A stretch of 63,828 nucleotides of DNA, filler included, from Hyphochytrium catenoides (Eukaryota; Protista; Hyphochytriomycota), in NCBI GenBank assembly GCA_900088475.1. It is 6 parts of 6 records of this genome, joined end to end, with 100 filler letters (N's around TTAATTAATTAA, not from the genome) between each part and the next. Parts side by side here need not be neighbours in the genome. Positions count along the whole stretch, not along the records: positions 49,752 to 62,632 come from FLMG01002126.1; 5 more parts are not named here. One strand, written 5' to 3'. The notes beneath the pieces are model-generated. The model did no database searches and had not been told where the DNA came from. It saw only the letters and a program-made list of their open reading frames with translations. Of the stretch, positions 6,473-62,632 are shown in pieces (within the stretch, counting starts at the first letter, position 1; each line of letters opens with the position of its first letter). The position numbers were made by a program, and so were the translations under genes.

Positions 6473-9330
6473 CAGAGAGAGAGAGAGAGACAGAGACAGA
6501 GACGGGGGACCGCGAGAGAAGAAGAGAGAGAGAGAGAAAGAGAGAGAAAGAAAGAAGGAGAGAGCGACAGTCTTACTGTCCATCGCCTGCACTTCCTTCC
6601 TGATATTCTGCTCCATTTTGAGTTGGTCTCTTAGCCGCTGAAGTTCTTCCTCCGCCGCTTTCAAACGAAAGATCTCTCCCTCCAGAGTGCGGATCGTCTT
6701 TCTCTCTCCATAGATTTCTTCCTGGTAGGCTTTCTTTAGAGCGCTGACCTGCATGAGAGAGAGAGAGAGGCGGGAAGGGAAGAGGGAGAGAGAGGGAGAG
6801 AAAGAGCGTAAGTGGAAAAGAGAGAGAGAACAAAACAGGGACAGAGAAGACCGCGAGAGAGAAAGAAAGAGAAGAAGTGGGCGAGAGAGAGAAAGCATTT
6901 GGGGAAGGGGGAATAAAGAGTCAAATAGATAATTGGGAGATACTGCGATTCGGGGAGAGAGAGAGAGAGAGAGAGAAGGGTTAGAGAAGAGACAACAAGA
7001 CACGGCAGAGAGAGAGAGAGAAAGACTATCGGGTTGCCATTATGGGGAGAGAGTGAAAGAGAAGTAGAGATGAAGAGAGAGAGAGAGATAAAGAGAGAGA
7101 GAGAGGGAAAGAGGGAAAGAGAGAGTCCAGTCTTCGGTTGTGACCTCTGCTTCATGGCCCTTCTCCGTCTCTTCCTGCCGTCTCCTTGCGGCGGTGACCT
7201 CAGCCTCCAGCTAGTATAGTAACCAGTGAGAGAAGAGAGAGAAGAGAGAGAAGAGAGAAAAGAGAGAAAAGAGAGAAAAGAGAGAAAAGAGAGAAAAGAG
7301 AGAAAGAAAGAGAAAGAATCACAAGAGTAGAAAGAATGGGGTTGATAAGAGAGTGAAGGCAAACGTGAAAGAGAAGAGAGAAGGAGGGAAAGAGTGAGAC
7401 ACGGGGTAAGACCATGAGTGAGACAGAGAGAGAATGAGAATATACCCCCGGAGAGGAAAGAAAGTCCGAAGCAAAAAGAAGAGAGAGAGAGAGACACACC
7501 AAGAGAGAGAGAGAGAGAGAGACACTTCTAGAGAAAGTTTGAGAAGAGAACACGTTACACTACAGGTAGAGATCTTGCAGCACTTGCGAGAGAGATGCCC
7601 GTAAAGAAGGTTGTGAGAAGAGCCGGGGCTGTCTCTCTCTCTCTCTCTCTCTCTCTTGTTTCCCCTTGTTACCTTTCTGATCTCTTCCTCAAATCTCTGT
7701 CTCTCTCCTTCAATGACGGTGACTCTTTCTCTCAAGGCAGAAATCTCTGCTTCCGCATTCTGCAGCGTTGTCTTTCTTAGAGAGAACTGAGATGGGAGAG
7801 AGAGAGAGACTCTGCTCTGACTCCTCCTGCTGGTAGAGAGAAGACCCTCCGTGGAGGTGATGCTCTGAGTCTCTCCTCCCTCAGTTAGTCTCTCTTCTTT
7901 TCTCGAGTTTCGTCGGGGAGAGAGAGAGGCGGTGGAAAGAGAGAGAGACACTTGGGGCGGAGAAGAGGGAACGGACGATATGAGCCTTTCTTTCAGCTTG
8001 AGAAGAGGTTGTGCCTCGGCCTGCCCGAGTGAGAGAGAGAAATGAGAAAGAATAATAATGATAGAGAGAGAGAGAGAGAGTGAGAGAACGGAGAAAGAGA
8101 GAGCACAGAGAAAGACAATGATAGTTAATTGTCTTGTGAAGGAAGGAGGAAAAGGCATTGCAAGACAGACACAGAGAGAAAGTGACACGAAAGGAGAGAG
8201 ACCCCATAGAGAGACAGCAAACGGGCAGAGACAAAGAGAGAGAGAGAACACAAGGACCAGCAAAAGAGAGAGCGATGAGAAGAAAAAAGGAGAGCAGAGA
8301 AGGGAAGAGAGAAGAACCACAGAAATGCAGGAGGAGTCTGAGCGAAAGGAAGAGTGGGAGAGGAGAGAAAGACAGTGCGTGAGAGAGAGAGAGAGACAGA
8401 GAGAGAGACAGTGTGTGCGTGTGAGTGAGAGAGAGTGAGAGAGAGAGAAAGAAAGAAGAGGGCGAACTCTCTTACCGGTGGCACTGTAGCCAATGACGCT
8501 GTGTCTTCTTCCGACACTAGCACTTGATCTTTAATCAGAGAAAATTTAAAGGAAGAGAGAAAGTGAGTAAGAGAAGAAATTCCGAGGGAGAAAAAGCGAA
8601 CGAAAGAGAAAGACAGGATATCACGGGAAGAGAGAGAGAGAGAGAGAGAGCATTAAGATAGAGCTCAATACAAAAATCCTGTAAGGTTTCGTTCTGTATA
8701 AAGGTTGATAACTTTCCCTCCAACTCTTCCGTCATCTATCTAACTCTCTCCCTCTCTGCAATCTCTCTCTCTCTCTCTTTCTTTCTCTTCTCTCTCTCTC
8801 TCTCCCTGCCATACCTTCATAGGCCAGTTCCTGCACTTTCCTGATCTCTGTCATTTTTCGGTTGATCTCCAGAAGAGCCAAAGCTTGGGCCTTTGCGACT
8901 GGCAGTATCTGTAGGAAAAGAAAGTTTCTCTCTTAGCGGAGAATCTCTCTCTTTTTCTTCCCTTTGTAACTTTTTCTTCCCTCTGTCTCTCTTCCTTTTT
9001 CTCTTCGAGGAGAATCTGTCTCTTCTTCTACCCTTTGTAAACTCTTTCCTCCCTCTGTCTCTCTTCCTCTTTTCTCTTCGGAGCTCGATGTTCTCCACGC
9101 TGTTATCCTTTTCATCTTTTCTCTTCTTCAGACAACTATTTCTCTCTCTGTGTTCCTCTTTCGTCGTAACTCTCTTTCTCTCTCTCTCTCTTCTCATTCA
9201 GTAGACATATCACTAACTCCCCTAGTGCCAGTCTACCTTTTCCTCATTCTTCGCTTTCGTCGCTTACTCTCTCCCTCTTTTTCCTTTCTCTCTCTCTCTC
9301 TTCCTCTCTCTCTCTCTCATTCTCTCTGTA

Positions 9331-49751: not shown

Positions 49752-49782
<31 letters not shown>

Positions 49783-50032
49783 GGAAGAGAGAAAGAAGGT
49801 TTGGGGGCAGAGGAGCGTGGCATTGAGTGCAGAGGAAATTGGGGCCATCGCGGCAGCTCAGCCTGCCATGCTCATCGTTGATGACGGGCAGGGAAGAGCT
49901 TGAGAAAGGAGGCCTCCTACAACCACAATCGCCGCAAAAGAGAGGCACGTGAGAGAGAGAAAGAGAGAAAAGAGAGAGAGAAGAGGGACCGAGACCAACC
50001 TGTGTCTCTCCTCCGCTACCACTCCGGTTCCA

Positions 50033-50235
50033 ATGTCCTTCAAAGTGGTTTATATCCCGTGTGACGGCTCTCAGCCGCTGGCGGAGTGGGACATTCCGAT
50101 CCCTGAGGGAGAGGAAGACCGCTGCCTCACTGACAGACTGAAGAGACACTTCAACCAAGACAACGCCACGCTAGACAAAGAGAAGTATAAGCACCAAGTA
50201 GTCAGCCAGGTAGGAAGAGAGAGGAAGAGAGAGAA

Positions 50236-50292
<57 letters not shown>

Positions 50293-50627
50293 GAGAGGAA
50301 GAGAGAAAGAGAGAGAGAGTAAGAAAGAAAGAAAGAAAGGGACAGAACTGTGTAAACGAGGATGAAAAAGCGAAACAGGGCCGTTCCGGAGAGGCGAAAG
50401 GGAGAGACAGGGAAGAGAGAGTGGAGAGAGGGAAACACTCGCAGAGAGAAGGAGCAGAGCAGAGATTAAGAACGAGAAAGCAGCACTGGACATTGTCACG
50501 ATCTCGCTCTCGCTCTCTTTGCTCTCTCACCCTTAGTCGAGCTCTCTCTCGTTCTTCCTTCTCTCATACCCTATCTTCTCCTATCTCGGACTCTCTCTCT
50601 CTGCGTCTCCCCATCCCTCTTTATTGA

Positions 50628-50658
<31 letters not shown>

Positions 50659-51708
50659 TGTGTCTCTCTCTCTCTCTTTTCCTCTCTGTCTCTCTCTCTT
50701 TCTCTCTCTCTCCCAGCTCCCTCAGGGCACGACCCTCCGGCCCGAGATGCTGGACATGATCCTGGCGATGGACTCTCTGGTGGACACAGTTCCTTTGCTT
50801 TTGAACAGGAGAGAGGCGAAGTTCATCGGCGTCACGCTCTACGTCGATGACAGAGGAAGTGCCAAGGGCTTGCCTTTGAATGTTAGGGCTTCTGACATCG
50901 CCAGCCAGTGCGGGAAGCCCATGCAGGTGCTCGGCGATGCGTTCATTGGGAGAATGTACGATAATGGTGAGCAGTAGGGCCTCTTCTCTCTCTCTCTTTC
51001 TCTTGCTATCTCTCTCTTTCTCCCTCTGTCTCTGTCTGTCTCCTTTTCTCTCTGCGTCTCTCTCTCCTTATGTCTCTTTTCTTTTCCCTCTTTCTCACAG
51101 ACACCGAGAGATCTTCTCCGGTTACCCGCTCTGTCTTTGTCTCGCTGGCTTCCTATAGAGCCCCCATTTCACTCTCTCTCTCTTCATGCTCTCTCTTTTT
51201 CTCTCTGTCTTTGTCGTGCGTCTCTCTCTCTCTTTTGGTTTCCTCCTTTACCTCTTGTTTCTCTCTCTGTCGCAGGAGCTCTCCTCCTCTGCCCTATATT
51301 ATTCCTGGTATTCTCTCGCTGCGCTTCTGTTCTCTTCCTTGCTTCTTTCTCCTGGCAGCAGGTCAGTTAATCCTCCTTTCTCTCTCTCTCTTTTTTCTTT
51401 CTCTCTCTCCGCCGTCTTAAGATGATGACCTGAAGCGCCTGGACTTCACCCTGAAGGACCTGGACAGCTCTGCTTCCTGGATCAAGAAGGCAAGAGAGAT
51501 GAACAAACAGCTTGCCGCCGCTGCTAGTAGAGGAGAAAGTGGTAAAGGAGAGAGAAAGATGACGGGAGAGAGAGAGAAAAGCTGCAACTATGTTGATTGT
51601 GCCGCTCCTGCCTCTTCCCGCTGCAGTCGCTGCAAGAAAGTTTTCTATTGTTCAAAAGAGCATCAAGTCGCTGACTGGAAGGCTCACAAGCGCCAGTGCG
51701 CCGCTTAA
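50033..51708 (+). CDS. zf-MYND protein (~237 aa) with a conserved N-terminal globular domain
   Basis: Exons 50033-50209, 50717-50966, 51422-51708 (phases consistent). C-terminal MYND finger CNYVDC...CSRCKKVFYCSKEHQVADWKAHKRQC. N-domain motif LYVDDRGSAKGLPLNVRASDIASQCG...VLGDAFIGR. Confidence 0.88.
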
Positions 51709-52173
51709 GATACGCGCGCGAGCGCGAGAGAGAGAGAGGAAAAAAGAAGAGAGAAAGAGAGAGAGGGGTTATGCTTGATGGCCAAAGATAAGAAGTGTTT
51801 GAACTAGGATATCAAAGAGGAAAGTACAGGATATAAAGATCTCCTGATGACGCTGCTAGGAGAGAAGTCAGTCGAGGATGAGGACACCTTTTCTTTCCAT
51901 TCTCTCTCCTTGTAAGAGTTGAATTTATTTATGTACAGGCCTGAGTCCCATCCTATCGAAGAGAGATGTCCCTCTTCATATTTCTTCTTCTCTCCCTTTT
52001 CACTTCTTCTCTACTTTCTGTCCCTCCAACTTCTTGTCTTACAGCTAGCAGAGAATCTCAATCTCTCTCTCCCTTGGATGCCTCTCTCTCTCCCTGTCTG
52101 CGATGAGTCTCTTTTTGCAGCCCGCGTCTGAACCAGTTCTGAGAGCAGAGAGAGGAAATGAAAGGGTTTAGGG

Positions 52174-55100
52174 CTATTTGTCTGGTGCGGTGAGCGGCAG
52201 ATGGAGACGCTGCAGCGCTTCTTCCCTAGTCAGCCATATCTCCTCTTTCTCTCTGTCTCTCCCATAAAGTGTGACCGCTACTCTGGTGGGAAGACGTGAG
52301 TCTATCCATTGCAGCCTAAGCTCGATCTCTCCTGCTATAGCTCTTTCTGCAGCGGAGTGCGAAGAGAGAGAGAGAGACGTAGGTAGCCTCTTCTCCCAAA
52401 ACTTTCTTCTCTTCAGCGGGAGGATAGCGTGATATACCTTCCCTCCTGCCAGCTCTGCCATGGGGATCACAACCTGCCATTGACAGCGAAACACATGGAA
52501 AGAGAGAGAAAGAGAATGAAGACAGAGAATATGGAGAGAGTGAGAGAGAGAAGCTGACATTTGCGGCAGGGCTTTACGCTAGGGTGAACTATATCCCTGC
52601 CCAGAATTATTGCAGAGATGAAGCGTAAAAGATTCTAGAGGAGAGGAAAGAAAGATAAGGGAAGGGAAGGGAGAAAGCAAGAGAAAGAGGAGAGAGACAG
52701 AGAGAAAAAGAGAGAAAGAAGAGATTGTCTGTCTGTATGAGTGAATGGCCAGGTGCCCACCACTCACCTCTCCTACATAGCTTCCAATCGCCCCTGTGGC
52801 TCCATTTCTCTCCTTTCTGCCCCCTCCCATGAGTCTATTATACACAGTGAGGGTCACTCTCTCTCTCTTGTCAGTCACCGGGACCTCGAACCTCTCTCCC
52901 CAGCGCGGCTGCGTGGTGCCCCAGCGGACAGAGGTGTGGAAGAGAGAGGAAGAACAGCGGATCTCACAATAGCGATCATTCAGGAGAGAAGAAGAGGAAG
53001 GAAGGCGCTTCGCTCCGATGACGTAGAGGCAGAGAATGTCAGGAGTAAAGACCAATCTCTCGCCTCTTCCTTCTCTTTCTCTCTCTTCTTTTACTTCTCT
53101 CTCTGGGCTAGAGTCGTGAGGGTAGTAGTCCAAAAGCTTGGAAATGGTGGCCTGGCGATAAAGTCCAGGCTCCGAAGGATCAGATATCAACACTGAAGCT
53201 CCGACCTGAGAGGGAAGAGAGAGAAAGAGACAGAGAGATAGAGTGTTTGTTACTCCCCCGCACCGAGCTTACACCCCACGACGCTGCAACATACGAGGAT
53301 GCTCCGCGAAAGACGGGAGTGGGAGGCAGAGGAAAGAGGCTTTTGAGAAAGAAAGAGAAGAAGAGTCAGAAACGCACAGAGTCCCCGAATAAAAGGGAAA
53401 GAAAGACTCAGAATGTAACGTAACACACATTGCCGAGGACAGAGAGACAGAAACTGAGTGAGGCACACAGCCAGAGAGAAAGAGAGAGAACGAGAGAAAG
53501 GTAGAGGATTTGAGAGGGGCATCAGCGGTCAGGATGGGCTTATTGACTAAGCGGGACTGTGGCTGGAGAAAGGAGAGAACTACCTCAAAGAAGTCTATCA
53601 TGGTCGGCACCCAAGGGCGGCACTTCGCCCTCGGCACCCAGACGGCGACATCCTTAGAGTTGTGATGCCAAGAGAGGAGAGAAGAGGAGGAAAGAGAAGA
53701 GGAAAGAGAGGAAGAGAAACCCAAAGGCTCTCTTCTCTCGAGGTCTTCCTTCCCTCCGTCGTCCGGCCGCGGGCTTACACTGCTTGGAGACCCAGACGGT
53801 GAGAGTGCAGGAGGGCACACTCCAGAAAAAGAGACCTGGTCAGTGGAAAGGAAAGCAACAGGTCAAAGAAAGTCTATGAGAAAGAGACAGCGGTCAAGAA
53901 AGAGACTCAGCGAGAGGATTAAGGCAGATGACTCAAAGGTGGTAAGGGTCCCGAGAAATGAAAGAACCCTTGGCAAGGCAGAGCACCTCTCAGTCGCTGC
54001 AAATAACAAGGGAAGAGGGTAGGAAAGAGAGAGAGAGAAAGAGAGAGAGAGAGTCAGGCTTGTGGAGATGGGGAAAGAGGGAAGGTCGCAGAGAGCAGTG
54101 AGAGGCATTCAAGACGAGCAGATAGAAAACAATAGTGAAGGATGCAGAAAGAACGATTCGAAGAAAGGAAAGAAAGAAAGAAAGAGAGACAGAAAAAGAG
54201 GCACCTGTAGCTTGTCGGTTCCAACCCAAAGCACCACCGCCGAGTAGAATTCAGCAGTACCTCTCCCATCCCTCTCTCCCTCTACTAATATCTCTCTCCC
54301 TATCATCTGCATGGAGCGGTGCACCGCTGCTTTCTGTCTTCGACTCCTTCTCTTGATCTCCACTCTCAGTGCGGCACTCTGCCCGTGCACACTGCTTCGG
54401 AGCAAGAAGAGAGAGAGAAGAGTGAGATGCTCCAAGAGAGAAAAGGCAATGAGTCTCTCTACATTTGTTAGGCAATCCTGCACGGGGCCGTAGGTCTCCT
54501 CGCTCACAGGACATCCCCAGAGTACGTCTAACCCTCCCGTAGTGTTAACAAAGAGTCCAACAGCCACGGCGAGAGACAGAGAAGAGAGAGAGAGAAAGAT
54601 TCTCTCCCACTGTCCAATGCCATGCGCTCTCTGAGGCATTGCCCTGCGATAATCAATGCAAATCCTCACAGCATCAAAATGCTGGGCAGCCAGATTGTGC
54701 AAGAGGGCGCAGAGGGCGCAGAAGGGCCAAACAATGGAAAACATAGTCACCACCGAGAACTGCAGTGCCATCCGAAGGAAGTCTTCAAAAGGAGAGTAAG
54801 AGGAGAATGAGGAAAGCTCTAAGATCTCTGTCGAAGATCGACAGAGATCACGGCAGTTCCACTCTTTCTTTAGCCTGAGCCGGGAAGACAGATCGCGACA
54901 AGCGCCGGCGGACGAGGCAAAGCGAGTCTGAGATGAGGAGAGAGACTCCTTCATCCGCTGGTACCAAGGGTCAGACGATTCCAAAGCTACGTGTGGGGAT
55001 AGGGAGCCCTCCTGACATAGCGACAGCGTGGAAGTACAGAGACATAGATAGTAATGTTCGTAGGGAGAGTAACCGGCGGAGAGAGAAAAATGGCGCAGGG

Positions 55101-57830
55101 AAAGACACATTTTGTTAGAAAATGAGAAGAACAAGAGGTAGAGAGGTAGTAAAGGAGGCGCGAAAAAGAGAGACAAAGACCGAGCGAGAGAGAGATATCG
55201 GAAAAGATGCAGACAGCAATTCCTTACCTCGACCGTAGAAATAATCCGTTCGTCCTCTTCTTCCAAGCTTGGGCTCCCTACCATTGCCTTGGGCAGAGCA
55301 GCGTTCTCCTCTGTCTTCTCCTGTTGATTCACATTCCTTTTCACGCGGTTACCAACATACATCTTCACCGCTCTCCCTGCGTCCACGAAGGCATCAGAGG
55401 TGGAGAGGAAGTGCTCCCTTCCTCTTCTAACTGCCTTTCTTAGCAAGACTGGAGCAAAGGTGTTGACTATGAGGTTGAGCAGCTGCGTCACAATGAGTGG
55501 AGTGACAAACGCCTTATCCATAGCCAGTCTCCCCTCTCTCCACTCCCTTGCGTACAGCACTCTTCCTCTAAAGGTGAGGAGCTCATTGCTATCCACATTC
55601 TCCTTGATCCAGTGCTGCAGCTCTGCTCCGTACGGAGTGTACACGAAGGCGAGAAGAAAGAACCAGGAGAAATAGCCTGTCCATACGAAGATGAAGGTTT
55701 TAAGCGTGTAATGGTACTCTCTCTCCTGCAGCGTCCGCCAGTTCTCCCATAGGGTCCACCGATGACTTGCCCAGTCAAAGAACGCGGTGAAAAGAATGTC
55801 AATGGCTAAGCCTAGGATGATACCTTGGACAAGGATGTACAGCCATCTCGCGCTCCCAATATGCGCCGTTGCCGTCGGAAAACAACCAAGAAAGGAGGAA
55901 CAAGGGGGAGAAACGGCGCCGAGGGCGCAGTACGCCTCACAATCTGCCCCGTACTCGGAAGAGAAAGGCAGACGACGGCGGCACGCCTCGAGGCAGGAAG
56001 ACAATGTCCCACTGCAGCGTGGATCCCCGCATTGTGGGGTCATGACTGCTATGATATACCACTGAGCGAAGAGAGCTACCAGCACTATGACGACAGAGAT
56101 GCAGATGAGAGCAAAGAGAAAAGACAGAAGACGTTTGAGAGTGCGGGCAAGAGCGCTGTACTCTTTGACCTCCACATACTCTGGCGGCTCCCCTTCTTCC
56201 GCTATGTTCACCTGTCTGATGCGATAATGCTTAAACTGAGGGTTCTCCTCTTCTGCCTCCTTGTAGAACATCACTCCGTAGCGTACTCTTAGCTTGTTCT
56301 CTAGCCTCTCCCACACTTTCAGCATGCACGGTGCCCACACCAGAGCCACCAGAAGTCCAAACAGAGAGAGACACGAGGCATACAGTCTATAGTCCAGCCA
56401 GCGGAGTGAGAGCCAAAGGAGGGTGCCAACGATCGCGATGACTTTAAGAGAATCCACATAGTGAGAGACAAAATGAAAATAGAAGGCAACTTTCAGGCCA
56501 AAGTGATTCTTAAAGCGGAGAAGGACGAGGTTCTTTCGTGCGCTATTGCCCGTTATACTGCGCCAAAGGCCCATGATCTCATTGTTGAAGTGTGGGTCAT
56601 GCAACGGGAAGATGGCATGAATCGCTGGATCTGTGTTCTCTTCGATCCCTGACAGCCCAGCACCAGGAGGAGAGACGTTGGAAGAGCGGCAGAGTAAACG
56701 GCCCAGAGCTTCGAGTCTCTCGGCAGGACTGAGGCGTCTTTTCTCTCTCTTTCTCTCTTCCATCACAGAGTCCATCTCTTCCTCACTATACAGTTCTGCC
56801 ATTCTCTCCAGGCGAAGGAGCCTGTCTTCTCTCTCTACCAGCCATTCTGGCGCATGGAGAAGGAGAACAATGTAATCCTGAGAAGTCCTTGTAGGTTGGA
56901 GTTCTGTTAGCCTCAGTTCTGCGCTTATAAGCCGACGAAGGAGGTCGAGCTGTGCCTCTTCCTCTCTCTTGTCTCTCCTAAGAATAAGGGCGAAGTCATA
57001 CTCTAAAGACGGACGGAGGTTGCACAGAGCCACCAGCTCTCTGTCTAGGACGATGCACTTGGTAAAGCGCCGCGCCACAATCCTTGTCCTTATATCTCTC
57101 TCTTGCATCAGGTCTCTCTCCATCTCTTCTCTCTTTTTATCTCCCTTCGAGGATACTATGGAGAGAGCGCCAAAGTGATCGTAGCGGGAGAGGTTGCCTC
57201 TCTCCTCCCAGTTGGCAGCTCCGTCTCCACTAGGTCCCGGTGAGTGTACAAGGCGAGAGACTTCTCCTGTTTCTATTATAAATAGCTTAGAAAGTGCCTC
57301 TTCGTGGGTGGTGATGACCTCGTCCTCTTCATAGATCAGCATCTTGCACAGCGGAGCAAGCTCCCGAAGCTCTTCGATCTGGAGGAAGAGAAGTCAGCCA
57401 TAGAGACAGATCGAGAGAGAGAGTTCAAGAGAGAGGAGCGAGGAACATGAGAAAGAGACACAGTGAGTAGGTGAGTTAGAGTAAGAGAGAGAGATAATAA
57501 GATCCGTTAGAGCATGGGAAGGCTGCAAGTACACAGCCGAGAGAACAGTGGCAAGAAAGCGGGGAGGGGAGTCGACGCAGCCCTACATAGCAAAAAAAAG
57601 AGAAAGGCACCTTCGGCGTCATACTAATCTGTCTCTCTGACCTGAAGCTGCCTTAGTAGCGGCACGTCCTGCAGGAAAGAGACACTGATCTCTGTGTTCC
57701 TCCTGGTGGCCGCATCAATCTTAGAAAAGAACAAGGGGCTGCGGCGCCGCCCATGGCTGGAAATGACGTGAGGATCCTCCTTAGGGCCTTGGATGGCTGG
57801 AGGCGCCCTCTTACGCAGTCGAGGAAGCAT
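52174..57830 (-). CDS. Anoctamin/TMEM16-family protein (~1378 aa) with N-terminal cyclic-nucleotide-binding(-homology) domain and C-terminal Tudor-like and C2 domains
   Basis: All phase-0 exons: 57830-57642 (start uncertain), 57378-55228, 55011-54205, 53835-53584, 53205-52768, 52473-52174. CNBD: FLQDVPLLRQLQ|IEELRELAPLC...LFIIETGEV...DHFGALS...IVARRFTKCIVLDRE. TMEM16: IFPLHD, KNHFGLKVAFYFHFVSHY, WTLWENWRT...YTLKTFIF, PFEDFLRMALQFSVVTMFSIVWP, DAVRICIDYRR..PQRAHGIGQW, LEHL. C2: LCLYVIGAKRL...DRYCEIR...TTQPRWGERFEV...GEIELRLQW. Confidence 0.9.
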
Positions 57831-59251
57831 GGCGTCGCCGTCCTCCAAAGACACCTGTCTCGCCCTTTCACACTACAGCTAATGCAACCATCACTCTTCT
57901 TCACGAGGAGGAGGCAATCATTAAAGAGATCATCTAGTTCCTCTTCTCTCCCTTGTGGTCCTCCTATTCGTCGGAGCTTGAAAGCCAGGTTGTCAGAGCT
58001 GTGGCTGGGGAAGAAGCAGCTTGGCAGCAACGCCTTCTTCCCACAGCAGCAGGTCGTCGATGATGGAGACGAAGCTTCATAATAAACGCGATGGCGTCTC
58101 TTTCTTCGTCTGATTCTGAACAGCGCAGTGTCTCTCTATCCATGCAACTTTACACAGCGAATGATTCATAGATTTCTAGCCCGTTGTTATATTACTGGTT
58201 ATTGGACCATGTCTTCGACAGTCTGGGACATTGAAATATTGAAGTTTGCGGGCGGGCGTTAGAGTCTTCCCCCAGGACTTGTCATTTTGATGACTGATGT
58301 GTCGATGATGAGAGAAGAAAGGAGGAGGAGGAGGATGTGAAGCAGCAGCAGCGGACGGAGACTGCTCCTGAGTATTATTATATATTGTGAAGCCTTTCTT
58401 CTTCGCTCGTTGTTGTTGTCGTGGTGGTGATCGCAGCAGCAACATGCCTTGCTTCTTCTTCTTTGATGCTGCTCCTGCGGTGCCCTCATCGAGAGGAGGA
58501 CTATTGGTGATCAGCAGTTCTGCTTGTGTGATCGATGAGGGAGGACAACATCGACCAGCAACGTAATAAAATCTACTCCGTAAATTATCTTCTAGTGGTA
58601 GTGAACTCTTCATGATCAGTCAGTCCGCCCTATCAATATTGTTTGCTTCCCTCTTGCTTGCCTGTCAGGCGGAGAGAGGCCTTTGCTTGGAAGCAGTTGT
58701 TATCACCCTGGCACTATTGTCATCAAGATACAATAATCAATCTTTAGCGAAAAAGTGTTCACCGGGCAGCTACTATTATCATGTACGGCACTACTAGACT
58801 AGTGGTAGTGTGGTTGAAGAAGAGTTCGCTGCTGGCATAGACGAAGCTGCTCTCCCTCTTAGTTAGTAATAACCACCAACAGTCACACTAGGGTTGTTGT
58901 CTAATCTTTATAGCGCAACCATAAGGCATGTCTTGCCTCCTCCTCCGCTAGCGCAGCACGCTGTAAGACTAAATAACAAACACCCCAGACTCGCATTTAG
59001 AAGTTTTTTCTTTCTGGTCACTAAAGAACATGCCTCATCGCAAGAAAGCCAAATATATTTAAACCTTCATTCTTCTTTCTGCCCCGATTTTTGAATACTT
59101 TTGCGTATCCTCTAAGGAGCTAGTTCTCTTCTCGTCTATGTCAAGCAACAAGACACCCCGCCTCTTTTCAGACGGGATCTCAGAAACAGCAACCACTGCT
59201 CAGCCATCTACTACCTAGACTTTACCTGTCATGCCAAGCAGCGACGAGCTA

Positions 59252-59671
59252 CTACTTAGGCAAGAGGGGATCCCGATGCGCCTCTGGTGGATCCAGATGG
59301 ACTCCGAAAGGCGCAAGAGCGAGCCGAGCGAGCTTTAGATGCGCCCAAGCAAAGGGAATTCCGATAATGGTCACAAACATTGAGAGGGACCAGAAGAGAT
59401 GGTTTATCGCTAGCACGATGCCCAATGGTAGCCAGAGGATGTTTAGACACAGAGATAGTAGGCCACTGGATCCCACAGTAGGGGCGTTATCCACGTTTAG
59501 AGAGAAAGGGAGAAGGGAGAGCCAGGCAATTTTGAAACATTGAAATCCAAAGGGAATGCCAACAATGGTGAGACAGAGCACCAGGCCCACGGCAGCCCAA
59601 AGAAGGAAGGACTCAATGCCTCCAAGCAAGAGCCAGAGTACGGTCAACAATAGCTCGAGAAGTTGATTCAT
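59252..59671 (-). CDS. yccF: Stand-alone YccF-family (inner membrane component) protein, 139 aa, intronless
   Basis: Two YccF half-repeats: LWLLLGG...LCLTIVGIPFGFQCFKIAWLSLLPF and LNILWLPLG...TIIGIPFAWAHLKLARLALAPFG. Confidence 0.88.
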   Translation of the reverse strand: MNQLLELLLTVLWLLLGGIESFLLWAAVGLVLCLTIVGIPFGFQCFKIAWLSLLPFSLNVDNAPTVGSSGLLSLCLNILWLPLGIVLAINHLFWSLSMFVTIIGIPFAWAHLKLARLALAPFGVHLDPPEAHRDPLLPK

Positions 59672-60557
59672 GCTTGCGCGGAATGGATGTGGAGGAGGAG
59701 GAAGCCTTTTCTGCCGGTAGAGACACGATGATGATGTGCCGCTAGTGCCTTTCGTTTCTGGTGTAAGGTCACAATATTTGAGAAAGCTTGTAAGGATCGG
59801 CAACAGGCCGCCCGGCCAGACTGGAAGCCTAGACTCTGACTGGCAAGTCTATGTTGTCTCTTTTGTTGCTGACACTTTCTTGCAATAAATTAATTATAAA
59901 GCCTGGCGTGAGCCTTCGCAGAGCAAGTTGATTGGATAGTACGTATTGACTACGAGCATAGACGACCAAAGAGCCCGAAGTCTGGCGAAGTCGGTTCAAC
60001 TGGACTGGCAGCAGCTGCTGCAGTGAATGACCGGAGATAAAGAAATGACTGAGAAATCGCACGATGCATAGCGGAGCCTCTATTCCAACAAGGCAGAGCA
60101 CAGACCACCAGCAGCGGGCTGCGGCGCGGCAGGACATACAGGCCGCTGCCGCTCAAGAACATCGATGAAGGAGCTTGGAAATGCAACTTCGGAACAGAAA
60201 AGACAATGGCAGAAGCTTCTGATCAGTGTGGATCCGCGGTAGATAAAGATACGCAAAAATAGATAGCCGCAGTCGGTAGACAGAGAGCCACCAAACTGTT
60301 GTGATGACGCCAGACAGAGCCTAAAGGTTTGCACCGTTTAGCGTGACAGAGTCAAGTATGAAAGGAGAGACAGAGTACGGAGAGATAGGTAGTACGTCAA
60401 GACAGAGCGTTGTAGAAGAGAGACAGAGCGACGGGACAGAACATGTTAGGGGAACAGCCATAAAGTTATGAGGTCTGTCTGAAACGGTTATTGTTCCCCA
60501 TCCAAAGGGGGGCCAAGCGATGCGGAGTGTACATACACTGGACAACAACAACTACAA

Positions 60558-60804
60558 GTGGTGCGTACCTTCGGCTACCTAGGTATCCATATGCCCCATC
60601 CCCGTGTTAACCTTAAACCACGGTACTCACCACCTATGAGACCAAGGATCCTAAGACGATAAAGGGTCAATCCCACACTTTCCCCAGGATCTTATGTGTG
60701 GGGACCCAGAATTCCCCCTGGTCCTCAACACAAAAAAGTAGGTTTGGTACTCAGGAGCCATATCTCTCGATGAGGGTTGCCTATGTCCTGAGGGAGCTAA
60801 ACCT
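60558..60804 (+). other. Candidate structured RNA/DNA element (three consecutive long stem-loops)
   Basis: Paired segments: 60558-60569/60622-60633 (11 of 12), 60637-60644/60719-60727, 60664-60678/60696-60707, 60740-60748/60796-60804, 60750-60756/60786-60792. Confidence 0.4.
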
Positions 60805-61094
60805 CTATCTTATTGTGCCGAATGCCTCCTCTAGCTTGTCCCTTAGTCAGCTCTGTCTCGTAGGTTGAAGTTGGTGGGAAATAAGTTCAGAAGGGCCAGC
60901 AGGAGGGCGGGTGGGCGGTACATACAGGCCAGGGCGGGCATCTCTGTAGGAAAGGAGAGATTCTCTCTTCACATCTCTTCCTCTCTTTCTCTTTTCTCTT
61001 CCTTCTGTCGTCCTCTCCTCCTTTTCCTTCTCTCACTCTTTGTTCCTTGTTTCCATCTCTTTCTCTCCATCCTCTCTCTCTCTCCATCCTCTCT

Positions 61095-61270
61095 CTCTTT
61101 CCTTTCCCTTTCCCTCCCTCTTTCTTGTCATTCCTCTAACTGTTTCTGTCATCTCTCTCTCTCTTTCTCTCCCTCTCGCTCTTTCCTTTCCCTCTCCCTC
61201 CCTCTTTCTTGTCATTCCTCTAACTGTTTCTGTCATCTCTCTCTCTCTTTCTCTCCCTCTCGCTCTTTCT
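61095..61270. repeat. 84-bp tandem duplication (2 copies) in CT-rich sequence
   Basis: CTTGTCATTCCTCTAACTGTTTCTGTCATC at 61124 and 61208. Confidence 0.85.
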
Positions 61271-62111
61271 CTTCCGCCTCTCTTTCTTCCCTCCAGGCCT
61301 CTCTCCCTTTCTCTCTCTCTCTCTCCCTCTTTCTCTCTCATTCTATCTCTTTCTCTATCTTTCTCTCTTTCTCTCTCTTTCTCTCTCCTTTTTCCTCTCT
61401 CACCACTAAGGCCAGGAATCTCCAACATGTTCCTACCTTTGGAAGATGGTTCTTTCCTCCTGCGCCTGCATCTTGGAACCACCATCGCCTGGATTCTTTG
61501 GTCTCTCTCCCTCGTCAGGTCCCTGCGCACGTGTGGCTGCTGCGGCATCTGCTCGAACCTCATGGAACATCACGCTTCCCATTGGCCCGATGGACGTCAT
61601 CTCCTTCGCTCAGGGACGCGTTGCGGCTCCCAATGTATTTTCCTTTCCATCTACACGGCTGGCCTCTGTCTACCATCATCATCGGTCGTCTTATCGTCAG
61701 CAGCTGCCCGCCCACAGACCTTCACTTTATCCGCTGCCGCCAGCCATGCTTCTCTCTTCTCGGAGCGTCCAATGCTGGAGCTTTGGGTTCAGTGAGAGCA
61801 CCGGAGGCAGTCGACAGAACAAATCATGACGAGGCCAAAATCTTTCATTAGCAAGTTCTGTCTCCCCTCTTTCTCTCTCTCTCTCTCTCTCTAGCTCTCT
61901 CTCTCTTTCAATGTATCTCCCTTTTCTCTCTGTCTCTCTCTCTCTGTCTCCACGTGGCTGTCCGACATCATCGCTCTCCGGTCTCGGGACGCTTTGCATT
62001 TCTCACTCTCTTCTCATTATAAATAGTTCTAGATTGACGTTCCACCACCTTTTCCTACCAGCACCCAACCGGCTCGCCGACCACGCTCGTTTTTTATTTC
62101 CTTTTATAAAA

Positions 62112-62155
<44 letters not shown>

Positions 62156-62260
62156 TTCTTTCTCTTTGTCTCTCTCTAGTCTCACTACTTTTTATCCTTC
62201 GCCGTCAACACACCATCCTCTCTCCTCTCTCTCTGTCTCTCACTCTCTCTCTCTCTCTCA

Positions 62261-62296
<36 letters not shown>

Positions 62297-62632
62297 GGAC
62301 TTTTTGGGCGACCTGCTGGCTGTGCATGAGAGTCTCTCACCAACGGTCAAGTATCTCCTCTGTTGATTGTTCTCATCTTCTTGTTCCTATGAAGAAAGTC
62401 ACAAAGAAGTAGGAGACGAAGCTCCTTGCGCTCAAGTCAGAGCCGCGCTATCCGCTCACTTATCTACGAGAGAGAGAGAGAGAAAAAAACTCTTTCTGAG
62501 CTCTGACCACTGGACACTGAATAAAACACACATAATAAACCGACAGAGAAAAGGCTTTCTCTCTCCTCTCATCTCGGCCTCGTCTCTTCTTTCTCTCTCT
62601 CTCTCTCTCTCTTGTCTTCTGCACCTCATTTT

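Follow-up and report, generated by a model that had tools for sequence, protein, structure and literature searches.

TMEM16 proteins are textbook Ca2+-activated chloride channels and lipid scramblases. To our knowledge, yeast IST2 is the only well-studied exception to their control by Ca2+. In IST2, three conserved acidic Ca2+ residues are substituted, and K443, located at the position of E506, replaces Ca2+ via salt bridges (PMC12618243). IST2 was long thought to be inactive but proved to be an active scramblase, which is constitutively active and Ca2+-independent and whose C-terminus binds the plasma membrane; IST2 and ANO8 are both TMEM16 relatives that act as tethers (PMC12618243). Here we describe a predicted TMEM16 gene from Hyphochytrium catenoides. 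It lies in a stretch of 63,828 nucleotides, filler included, from assembly GCA_900088475.1 (hereafter the window; positions count along the whole stretch), on the minus strand of the part at 49752-62632 (FLMG01002126.1). Its product would join a cyclic-nucleotide-binding domain (CNBD) fold, a TMEM16 membrane domain, a barrel region, and a C2 domain. Based on sequence comparison, the window protein is a new and very divergent member, the most divergent one, of an uncharacterised TMEM16 subfamily that is otherwise found, among named sources, only in oomycetes and in which the Ca2+ site of the membrane domain is altered.

Gene model and evidence for a single gene

Reading of the DNA and translation of the exons gave six exons that splice to a frame of 1378 amino acids with no in-frame stops. 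All introns are GT..AG, and the exon lengths of 189, 2151, 807, 252, 438, and 300 nucleotides are each a multiple of 3 (phase 0). An earlier reading of this DNA, made without database searches (the sequence-only reading), had proposed six phase-0 exons and a frame of about 1378 residues, which our analysis reproduced exactly. It had also claimed that the CNBD and TMEM16 parts run together within the exon at 57378-55228. We found that the CNBD-like part and the first two-thirds of the TMEM16 domain are indeed continuous in this exon, with the CNBD fold on residues ~1-120 and the Pfam Anoctamin match on residues 290-693. The features of the predicted gene are given below (TM, transmembrane helix).

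57830-57642 (-): exon 1, 63 codons from the ATG at 57830; its last ~13 codons open the CNBD ('SFLQDVPLLRQLQ')
57641-57379 (-): intron 1, GT..AG, CT-rich
57378-55228 (-): exon 2, 717 codons, unbroken; remainder of the CNBD, TMEM16 N-terminal cytosolic domain, TM1-TM6
57378-57019 (-): CNBD-fold domain, exon-2 residues ~1-120
57006-56503 (-): TMEM16 N-terminal cytosolic domain, adjoining the CNBD; aligns to nhTMEM16 112-306
55476-55462 (-): TM6 Ca2+-site positions (N448 and E452 equivalents), N and N
55227-55012 (-): intron 2 (inferred), 216 nucleotides, GT..AG, in the variable TM6-TM7 linker
55011-54205 (-): exon 3, 269 codons; TM6-TM7 linker, TM7-TM10, and first post-membrane barrel strands ('AEFYSAVVLWVGTDKLQ')
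54783-54673 (-): TM7/TM8 Ca2+-site positions, from the alignment to 4wis_A
53835-53584 (-): exon 4, 84 codons; remainder of the first Tudor/Agenet-like barrel and a Ser-rich low-complexity loop of ~45 amino acids
53205-52768 (-): exon 5, 146 codons; first two strands of the second barrel, acidic linker, N-terminal two-thirds of the C2 domain
52473-52174 (-): exon 6, 99 codons plus TAG (52176-52174); last C2 strands, then the conserved 'LQWIDSRLPTRVAV'

The C2 domain spans from ~53046 in exon 5 to ~52306 in exon 6.

The splice junctions were predicted from the genomic DNA together with homologue profiles. The profiles that bridge the junctions were built from oomycete sequences only, excluding the window protein, and they crossed all five junctions unbroken. 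The profile of the N-terminal module aligned to model residues 51-355 as a single domain across the exon 1/2 junction (E 6.7e-61), the profile of the C-terminal module aligned to model residues 1107-1366, again as a single domain, across junctions 4/5 and 5/6, and a short profile segment at model residues 1033-1054 crossed junction 3/4. The whole architecture is encoded in homologue P0003 by one uninterrupted open reading frame (ORF) of 1644 codons (contig L001, 870-5804), so the fusion is independent of any splicing model.

We also compared the gene with contigs from a DNA run carrying the same species label. Most of the differences from the window that were listed inside exons fell on codon position 3 (29 out of 35, binomial p = 2.3e-9). 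The exonic variants were distributed over exons 1, 2, 3, 5, and 6, and listed position-3 variants made up 2 of 3 in exon 1, 15 of 16 in exon 2, 5 of 6 in exon 3, and 5 of 7 in exon 6. The gene is under purifying selection. The predicted model is that of one expressed-type gene with a CNBD fold, a TMEM16 domain, a barrel region, and a C2 domain.

TMEM16 domain and its Ca2+ site

The Pfam Anoctamin profile (PF04547) matched at E 3e-71 (241 bits; cut-off 28), and the match covered positions 2-460 of the 460 in the profile. The match is divided between exon 2 (E 9.4e-43, profile positions 2-309) and exon 3 (E 2.2e-28, profile positions 316-460), and the anoctamin domain is complete, with ten helices. 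The N-terminal cytosolic domain also aligns to afTMEM16 103-303. By sequence, the closest solved structures were the nhTMEM16, afTMEM16, and TMEM16K scramblases, ahead of TMEM16F and TMEM16A.

The Ca2+-site residues were read from a pairwise alignment to nhTMEM16 (4wis_A), the numbering of which agrees with the published ligands. They are as follows.

N448 equivalent: N in the window protein, N in oomycetes
E452 equivalent: N in the window protein, N in oomycetes
54783-54781 (-), D503 equivalent: D in the window protein, D in oomycetes
54774-54772 (-), E506 equivalent: R in the window protein, H in oomycetes
54687-54685 (-), E535 equivalent: A in the window protein, A in oomycetes
54675-54673 (-), D539 equivalent: D in the window protein, D in oomycetes

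Three of the five acidic ligands of this helix 6-8 site are replaced in the window protein (E452N, E506R, and E535A) and two are kept. A motif scan covered 21 homologues, and each of them showed the pattern N, N, D, H, A, D. As read from these alignments, the altered site argues against ordinary Ca2+ gating, not against membership in the TMEM16 family, in which IST2 is accepted although it lacks the site.

A Cys-rich extracellular loop was also observed. Eight cysteines are invariant in a five-sequence alignment; the loop lies at ~55860-56030 (-) in the window and at residues 558-621 of the Achlya homologue P0001, where the cysteines are C558, C563, C572, C576, C598, C602, C614, and C621. The loop is probably a disulphide-stabilised ectodomain specific to the subfamily.

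CNBD-like N-terminal domain

An AlphaFold model of the N-terminus of exon 2, based on a 22-sequence alignment, folded as a CNBD with a mean pLDDT of 74.6, as expected from the sequence-only reading. The modelled domain is an eight-stranded beta roll with F69-G70, R94, and R97-T98 directly before beta7 (exon-2 residue numbering), in which a long helix at 81-94 replaces the short cassette helix. The top Foldseek matches in the PDB were the cyclic-nucleotide-binding domains of PKG, PKA-R, CRP, and CNG channels, with a probability of 1.00, E-values down to 5e-9, ~118 residues at 4-5 Å, and TM scores by target of 0.5-0.65. A profile of the N-terminal module built from the window protein and four homologues matched the CNBDs of PKG and PKA regulatory subunits in the PDB at E 3e-10 to 1e-6. 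Searched against 1.84 billion representative proteins, the same profile matched hundreds of multi-CNBD proteins on positions ~5-120 and plain TMEM16 proteins on positions 127-285. The CNBDs of SLC9C1 and CNG channels appear among the profile and fold matches.

The Anoctamin and C2 profiles expected from the sequence-only reading were found (E 3e-71 and 4.5e-9, respectively), but Pfam cNMP_binding had no match on the window pieces. On the homologues, this profile reached 15.7-22.7 bits, under the 27.5 cut-off, in every member tested. We consider the assignment of the CNBD fold sound, as it rests on the family profile and the fold of the model.

The phosphate-binding cassette is altered across the family. 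The FG of the cassette is invariant, but none of the 22 members keeps the Glu of FGE, and A, M, V, I, T, or S stands in its place. In an alignment with canonical CNBDs, the column of the canonical cassette Arg holds Asp in the window protein and V, L, A, or P in oomycetes, while a nearby Arg one residue out of register ('ER') is found in 16 of the 22 members. The window cassette also carries a charged insertion of 17 residues; the long helix at 81-94 is how the model renders it, and model confidence is low there. Neither the window protein nor the rest of the family has the F-G-E...R-[ST]-A cassette. Since the cassette is non-canonical, gating by cyclic nucleotides is only a possibility, as is the binding of cAMP or cGMP by this CNBD-like domain.

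Barrel region and C2 domain

The Pfam C2 profile (PF00168) matched exon 5 at E 4.5e-9, with 36.9 bits against a cut-off of 22, and it matched the homologues with 45-68 bits. The domain has the eight-stranded beta-sandwich fold of C2 domains, and its best structural matches include C2 domains of extended synaptotagmins. The C-terminal region was modelled on the Achlya orthologue, as the C-terminus of the window protein is divided over four exons. Strands flank the C2 domain in this model (19-110 before it and 275-303 after it), in agreement with the sequence-only reading, which had one barrel and then another with the C2 domain inside it. The 'LQWIDSRLPTRVAV' segment of exon 6 is the counterpart of the post-C2 strands.

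We take the C2 Ca2+-ligand positions from the five-Asp motif of synaptotagmin. On this assignment, the window C2 domain keeps one canonical Asp: Ser takes the place of the first loop-1 Asp, the second Asp survives as part of 'DRY', and the loop-3 sequence is 'VYNRL', with 11 residues inserted. About 3 of the 5 acidic loop positions are kept in the oomycete C2 domains.

The region between the TMEM16 and C2 domains is likely a Tudor/Agenet-like barrel. Agenet matches were found in 11 of 17 homologues, all sub-threshold (best E 3.2e-4), and Tudor_4 and Chromo_MORC2 matches were weak. Among protein-atlas neighbours, 9 of the 10 nearest named clusters were Tudor/Agenet families, with Tudor_3/Agenet clusters at scores of 0.70-0.76, which we treat as a lead. 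A profile of the barrel region searched against PDB sequences gave chance matches only, and fold searches with the whole C-terminal model returned C2 domains only, as the C2 domain dominated them. The proposed order of CNBD, TMEM16 domain, barrel, and C2-split barrel was recovered as a collinear arrangement in the oomycete homologues, while its Tudor/Agenet call stayed sub-threshold. Pythiales homologues have a variable Gly/Ser loop where exon 4 has its Ser-rich loop. They also have a disordered low-complexity linker of >100 residues before the barrel, where the window linker is short and folded.

Oomycete relatives and phylogeny

A protein search identified oomycete homologues of 1436-1644 amino acids that are 38-40% identical to the window protein and carry Anoctamin and C2 domains; over the oomycete relatives in general, identity to the window protein is 36-40%. 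A profile search gave 28 family members, and every full-length one has both the N-terminal and the C-terminal modules. At least 20 full-length oomycete proteins have the same collinear architecture, and in one homologue, on L001, it is a single ORF. The named members come from Achlya, Thraustotheca, Saprolegnia, four Aphanomyces species, Globisporangium, Lagenidium, Pythium oligandrum, P. insidiosum, and P. brassicae. There was no Phytophthora entry among the matches listed, which does not prove absence. The complete N-terminal module (CNBD plus TMEM16 N-domain) was found in two cluster representatives among the 1.84 billion proteins, plus a few fragments.

In a maximum-likelihood tree, the window protein grouped with the family against plain TMEM16 proteins (support 86/87). 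Its branch length was 4.46, compared with a median of 0.28 changes per column, and it may fall either inside or outside the two oomycete clades. The window protein itself was absent from the databases searched.

Family members are annotated as hypothetical or with automatic names such as 'Cyclic nucleotide-binding domain-containing protein' or 'C2 domain-containing protein'. A full-text literature search found no paper describing a CNBD-anoctamin fusion, and the sole oomycete mention that it found was an 'anoctamin-like protein' in an antigenicity table. The architecture, put forward from the window alone as a candidate new class not known to be characterised, is thus undescribed as far as this search goes but already present in the oomycete proteins above. 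It is real but not unique, and the subfamily is a TMEM16 variant and not a categorically new system.

Some deposited oomycete models are fused to neighbours. P0161 (Thraustotheca clavata, 2587 amino acids) carries SPT5 domains, P0168 (Lagenidium giganteum, 2366 amino acids) has fused PH and B56 domains, and P0157 (Pythium insidiosum, 1686 amino acids) is labelled 'pantothenate kinase'. On contig L001, PH and B56 are encoded by separate downstream genes (6714-8304), so the fused models look like annotation artefacts.

Proposed function and alternative explanations

By analogy with IST2, we favour on balance the reading that the window protein is a scramblase-type TMEM16 that is independent of Ca2+ and is controlled or targeted by its appended domains. 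As in IST2, Ca2+ at the membrane site would not be required; the protein would transport lipids and perhaps also ions, with targeting and any regulation coming from the appended modules. Because the window C2 domain lacks most of the Ca2+-ligand Asp residues, we propose that it would bind a membrane or a protein independently of Ca2+. The CNBD-like domain would regulate the neighbouring cytosolic domain, either as a ligand sensor or as a ligand-free module like the KCNH homology domain, which has a CNBD fold but binds no cyclic nucleotides. Control through the appended domains had also been suggested by the sequence-only reading. The replacement of three of the five Ca2+ ligands across the family speaks for a shift of control off the membrane Ca2+ site, and the non-canonical CNBD cassette leaves gating by cyclic nucleotides as a possibility only.

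Several points weigh against the reading we favour. IST2 retains a helix-6 Glu that pairs with its Lys, whereas the subfamily has Asn at this position, and at E506 the oomycete members have His, whose positive charge is not fixed; because of these two differences, the analogy to the Ca2+ mimic of IST2 is partial. Only a short linker joins the membrane domain of the window protein to its C2 domain, unlike the long disordered tether of IST2. The C-terminal fold is that of the Achlya orthologue model and not of the window protein, the putative Tudor/Agenet assignment is under every curated threshold and came up empty in the PDB profile search, and the gene model, including all five junctions, is predicted from DNA and homology. 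For all members of the family, function is suggested by sequence and analogy.

It is rather unlikely that cAMP or cGMP gates this TMEM16 scramblase or channel by binding to the N-terminal CNBD, which would then stand in for Ca2+ through its effect on the cytosolic domain next to it. The CNBD fold is genuine, a single exon places it immediately beside the TMEM16 N-terminal domain, the degenerate Ca2+ site means that another input is needed, and the window protein has R97-T98 directly before beta7, with the family 'ER' Arg only one residue off register. However, the Glu of FGE is absent from all 22 members, the canonical Arg column holds Asp or, in oomycetes, V, L, A, or P, the nearby Arg occurs in 16 of the 22 only, the window cassette is broken by its low-confidence insertion, and Pfam cNMP_binding stays under its gathering threshold in all members tested, with none on the window pieces. 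We are similarly doubtful that a cytosolic ligand sensor has replaced the membrane Ca2+ switch, such that a small molecule on the CNBD, be it a cyclic nucleotide or another ligand suited to the altered cassette, opens the lipid or ion path while the C2 domain and barrel set the location. If true, this would be the first TMEM16 so rewired, and no ligand-gated scramblase of this type has been described from any organism.

It also seems unlikely to us that the protein is dead for transport and works mainly to tether or scaffold membranes, e.g. where an organelle meets the plasma membrane, with the C2 domain binding its own bilayer or the facing one and the barrel binding a partner protein. The lost Ca2+ ligands, the extended-synaptotagmin tether C2 domains among the best structural matches of the C2 domain, and the >100-residue disordered linker of the Pythiales homologues would fit such a role, and the TMEM16 relatives IST2 and ANO8 tether (PMC12618243). 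However, family members show high conservation along the entire membrane domain, which is under purifying selection, the window linker is short, and IST2, once thought inactive, is an active scramblase (PMC12618243). We regard as improbable an ordinary Ca2+-activated TMEM16 with extra domains, in which Ca2+ would act via the remaining Asp and Asn residues or via the C2 domain. The equivalents of D503, D539, and N448 are kept, Asn can coordinate Ca2+, and the oomycete C2 domains keep ~3 of 5 acidic loop positions, but Arg or His at E506 together with Ala at E535 removes two central ligands and adds positive charge, and the window C2 domain keeps a single canonical Asp. It is hardly credible that the gene model is an artefact, with the barrel/C2 exons or exon 1 coming from separate genes, or that the locus is a pseudogene. 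Intron 2 is inferred, and the 5' end and junctions are predicted, but the homologue profiles are continuous over every junction, a single ORF on L001 spans the architecture, both end modules are present in all full-length members of the family, and the codon-position-3 bias extends to exons 1, 5, and 6, with no in-frame stops.

Gene boundaries, sequence variation, and neighbouring genes

Exon 1 has its first in-frame ATG at 57830, which may mark the 5' end of the gene. The oomycete homologues extend 100-160 residues further at the N-terminus than the window model. We searched the six frames of 57300-60300 with a profile of the oomycete-type leader and did not find an upstream exon for it (best E 0.18). 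At the start of exon 3, there are other phase-0 AG acceptors between 55011 and 54927. Position-3 variants at 54904, 54913, and 54925 indicate that coding starts upstream of 54925. The conserved 'SDPW...RLRLKKEW' segment, taken with the exon-3 variants, is compatible with the acceptor at 55011, and the range down to 54927 also fits. An extra intron inside exon 4 (GT ~53820, AG ~53651) might delete the Ser-rich loop; the simpler model was kept because the homologues also vary in their loop there.

The list of minus-strand ORFs contains a 1077-amino-acid ORF at 54109-57342 with shorter ORFs on either side. We rejected this ORF as a coding unit, as it runs through intron 2 and into intron 3. Intron 2 contains no stop and keeps the frame, which is why the ORF is longer than exon 2. 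The translation of intron 2 is rich in Leu, Ser, and Phe, and its DNA is CT-rich, like that of the other introns. Intron 2 is exactly 72 codons long, and an ORF-based annotation would add a hydrophobic stretch of 72 amino acids to the TM6-TM7 linker.

Compared with 52100-58099 of the window, the contigs of the DNA run were up to 5-10% different, and 110 of 248 pieces were 90-95% alike. This divergence reflects either high heterozygosity or a different strain. Small indels over the same range were confined to introns and the 3' flank. Apparent joints from the DNA contigs at the locus were rejected as artefacts, as their sides are 20-30 nucleotides long and all lie in GA/CT repeats. The introns and intergenic DNA of 49752-62632 are full of (CT)n/(GA)n low complexity, e.g. 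at 53250-53520, 53900-54200, and 61040-62300. Many ORFs in these tracts translate as SLSLSL or ERERER, and the tracts caused spikes in contig depth, e.g. 882 at 53300-53499.

The neighbouring features are as follows.

59252-59803 (-): ORF of 183 amino acids encoding two YccF 'inner membrane component' domains (Pfam 2.1e-28); it shares the strand of the TMEM16 gene and lies ~1.4 kb upstream of it
49949-50365 (+): ORF ('MSFKVVYIPCDGSQPLAEWDIP...')
50624-50977 (+): ORF ('...LLNRREAKFIGVTLYVDDRGSAKGLPLNVRASDI...') with a weak DUF3846 match (E 0.004, below threshold)
60865-61851 (+): 'FLSLSLPLSCHSSNCFCHLSLSFSPSRSF' twice in tandem inside a long low-complexity ORF, a local direct duplication in DNA that looks non-coding

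The YccF ORF best matches bacterial and metagenomic YccF proteins at no more than 60% identity, which is unusual for an intron-rich eukaryotic locus. The ORFs at 49949-50365 and 50624-50977 look like exons of one small gene.

Significance and comparison with known systems

The window gene and its oomycete relatives would represent a second, independent TMEM16 lineage with a dismantled Ca2+ site and a basic residue or His at the same key position. The CNBD fold, the Tudor-like barrel, and the C2 domain appear to be joined to TMEM16 uniquely in this lineage, and no close counterpart of the architecture was found outside the family among the 1.84 billion representative proteins. The architecture, and most of all the fact that the replacement of the Ca2+ switch is conserved, would surprise a TMEM16 specialist. 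The family makes it testable how cytosolic domains can rewire TMEM16 gating, and whether scrambling can come under the control of a second messenger or a protein partner. It is a lineage-restricted membrane protein worth characterising, and it occurs in oomycetes that are pathogens of animals and plants (Aphanomyces, Saprolegnia, and Pythium insidiosum).

The closest relatives of the window protein are the oomycete homologues. The Achlya hypogyna 'transmembrane protein' (P0001, 1436 amino acids) has the same domain order, including the C-terminal strands, and the same architecture is found in the 'C2 domain-containing protein' of Aphanomyces spp. and in the 'Cyclic nucleotide-binding domain-containing protein' of Pythium oligandrum and Globisporangium ultimum. 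These homologues share with the window protein the altered Ca2+-site pattern and the Cys-rich extracellular loop. The window protein differs from them by Arg instead of His at E506, by the 17-residue cassette insertion, and by a more degenerate C2 domain. The window gene also has five introns, whereas one oomycete homologue is a single ORF.

Among solved structures, nhTMEM16, afTMEM16, and TMEM16K are the best matches to the N-terminal cytosolic and membrane domains of the window protein. Unlike it, they have a full Ca2+ site and no CNBD, barrel, or C2 domain. A cytosolic CNBD fold on a membrane transport domain, as predicted here, is also known from CNG, HCN, and KCNH channels and from the sperm Na+/H+ exchanger SLC9C1. 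In those proteins, however, the CNBD is C-terminal to an unrelated membrane domain, whereas here it is N-terminal to TMEM16 and its cassette is non-canonical. Compared with the C2 domains of extended synaptotagmins, ferlins, Munc13, and cPLA2, the window C2 domain lacks most of the Ca2+-coordinating Asp residues and, unlike them, sits between strands of another small barrel.

IST2, the endoplasmic reticulum scramblase and endoplasmic reticulum-plasma membrane tether of Saccharomyces cerevisiae, offers a functional analogy only, and we do not claim membership of the IST2 clade. IST2 differs from the window protein in that it has no CNBD, barrel, or C2 domain, has a long disordered linker with a polybasic end, and keeps the helix-6 Glu where the window family has Asn. 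The two proteins are alike in that 3 of the 5 acidic ligands are substituted, with a basic residue at E506, and in that both carry a C-terminal cytosolic extension, which ends in a lipid-binding element in IST2 and contains a C2 domain of lipid-binding type in the window protein.

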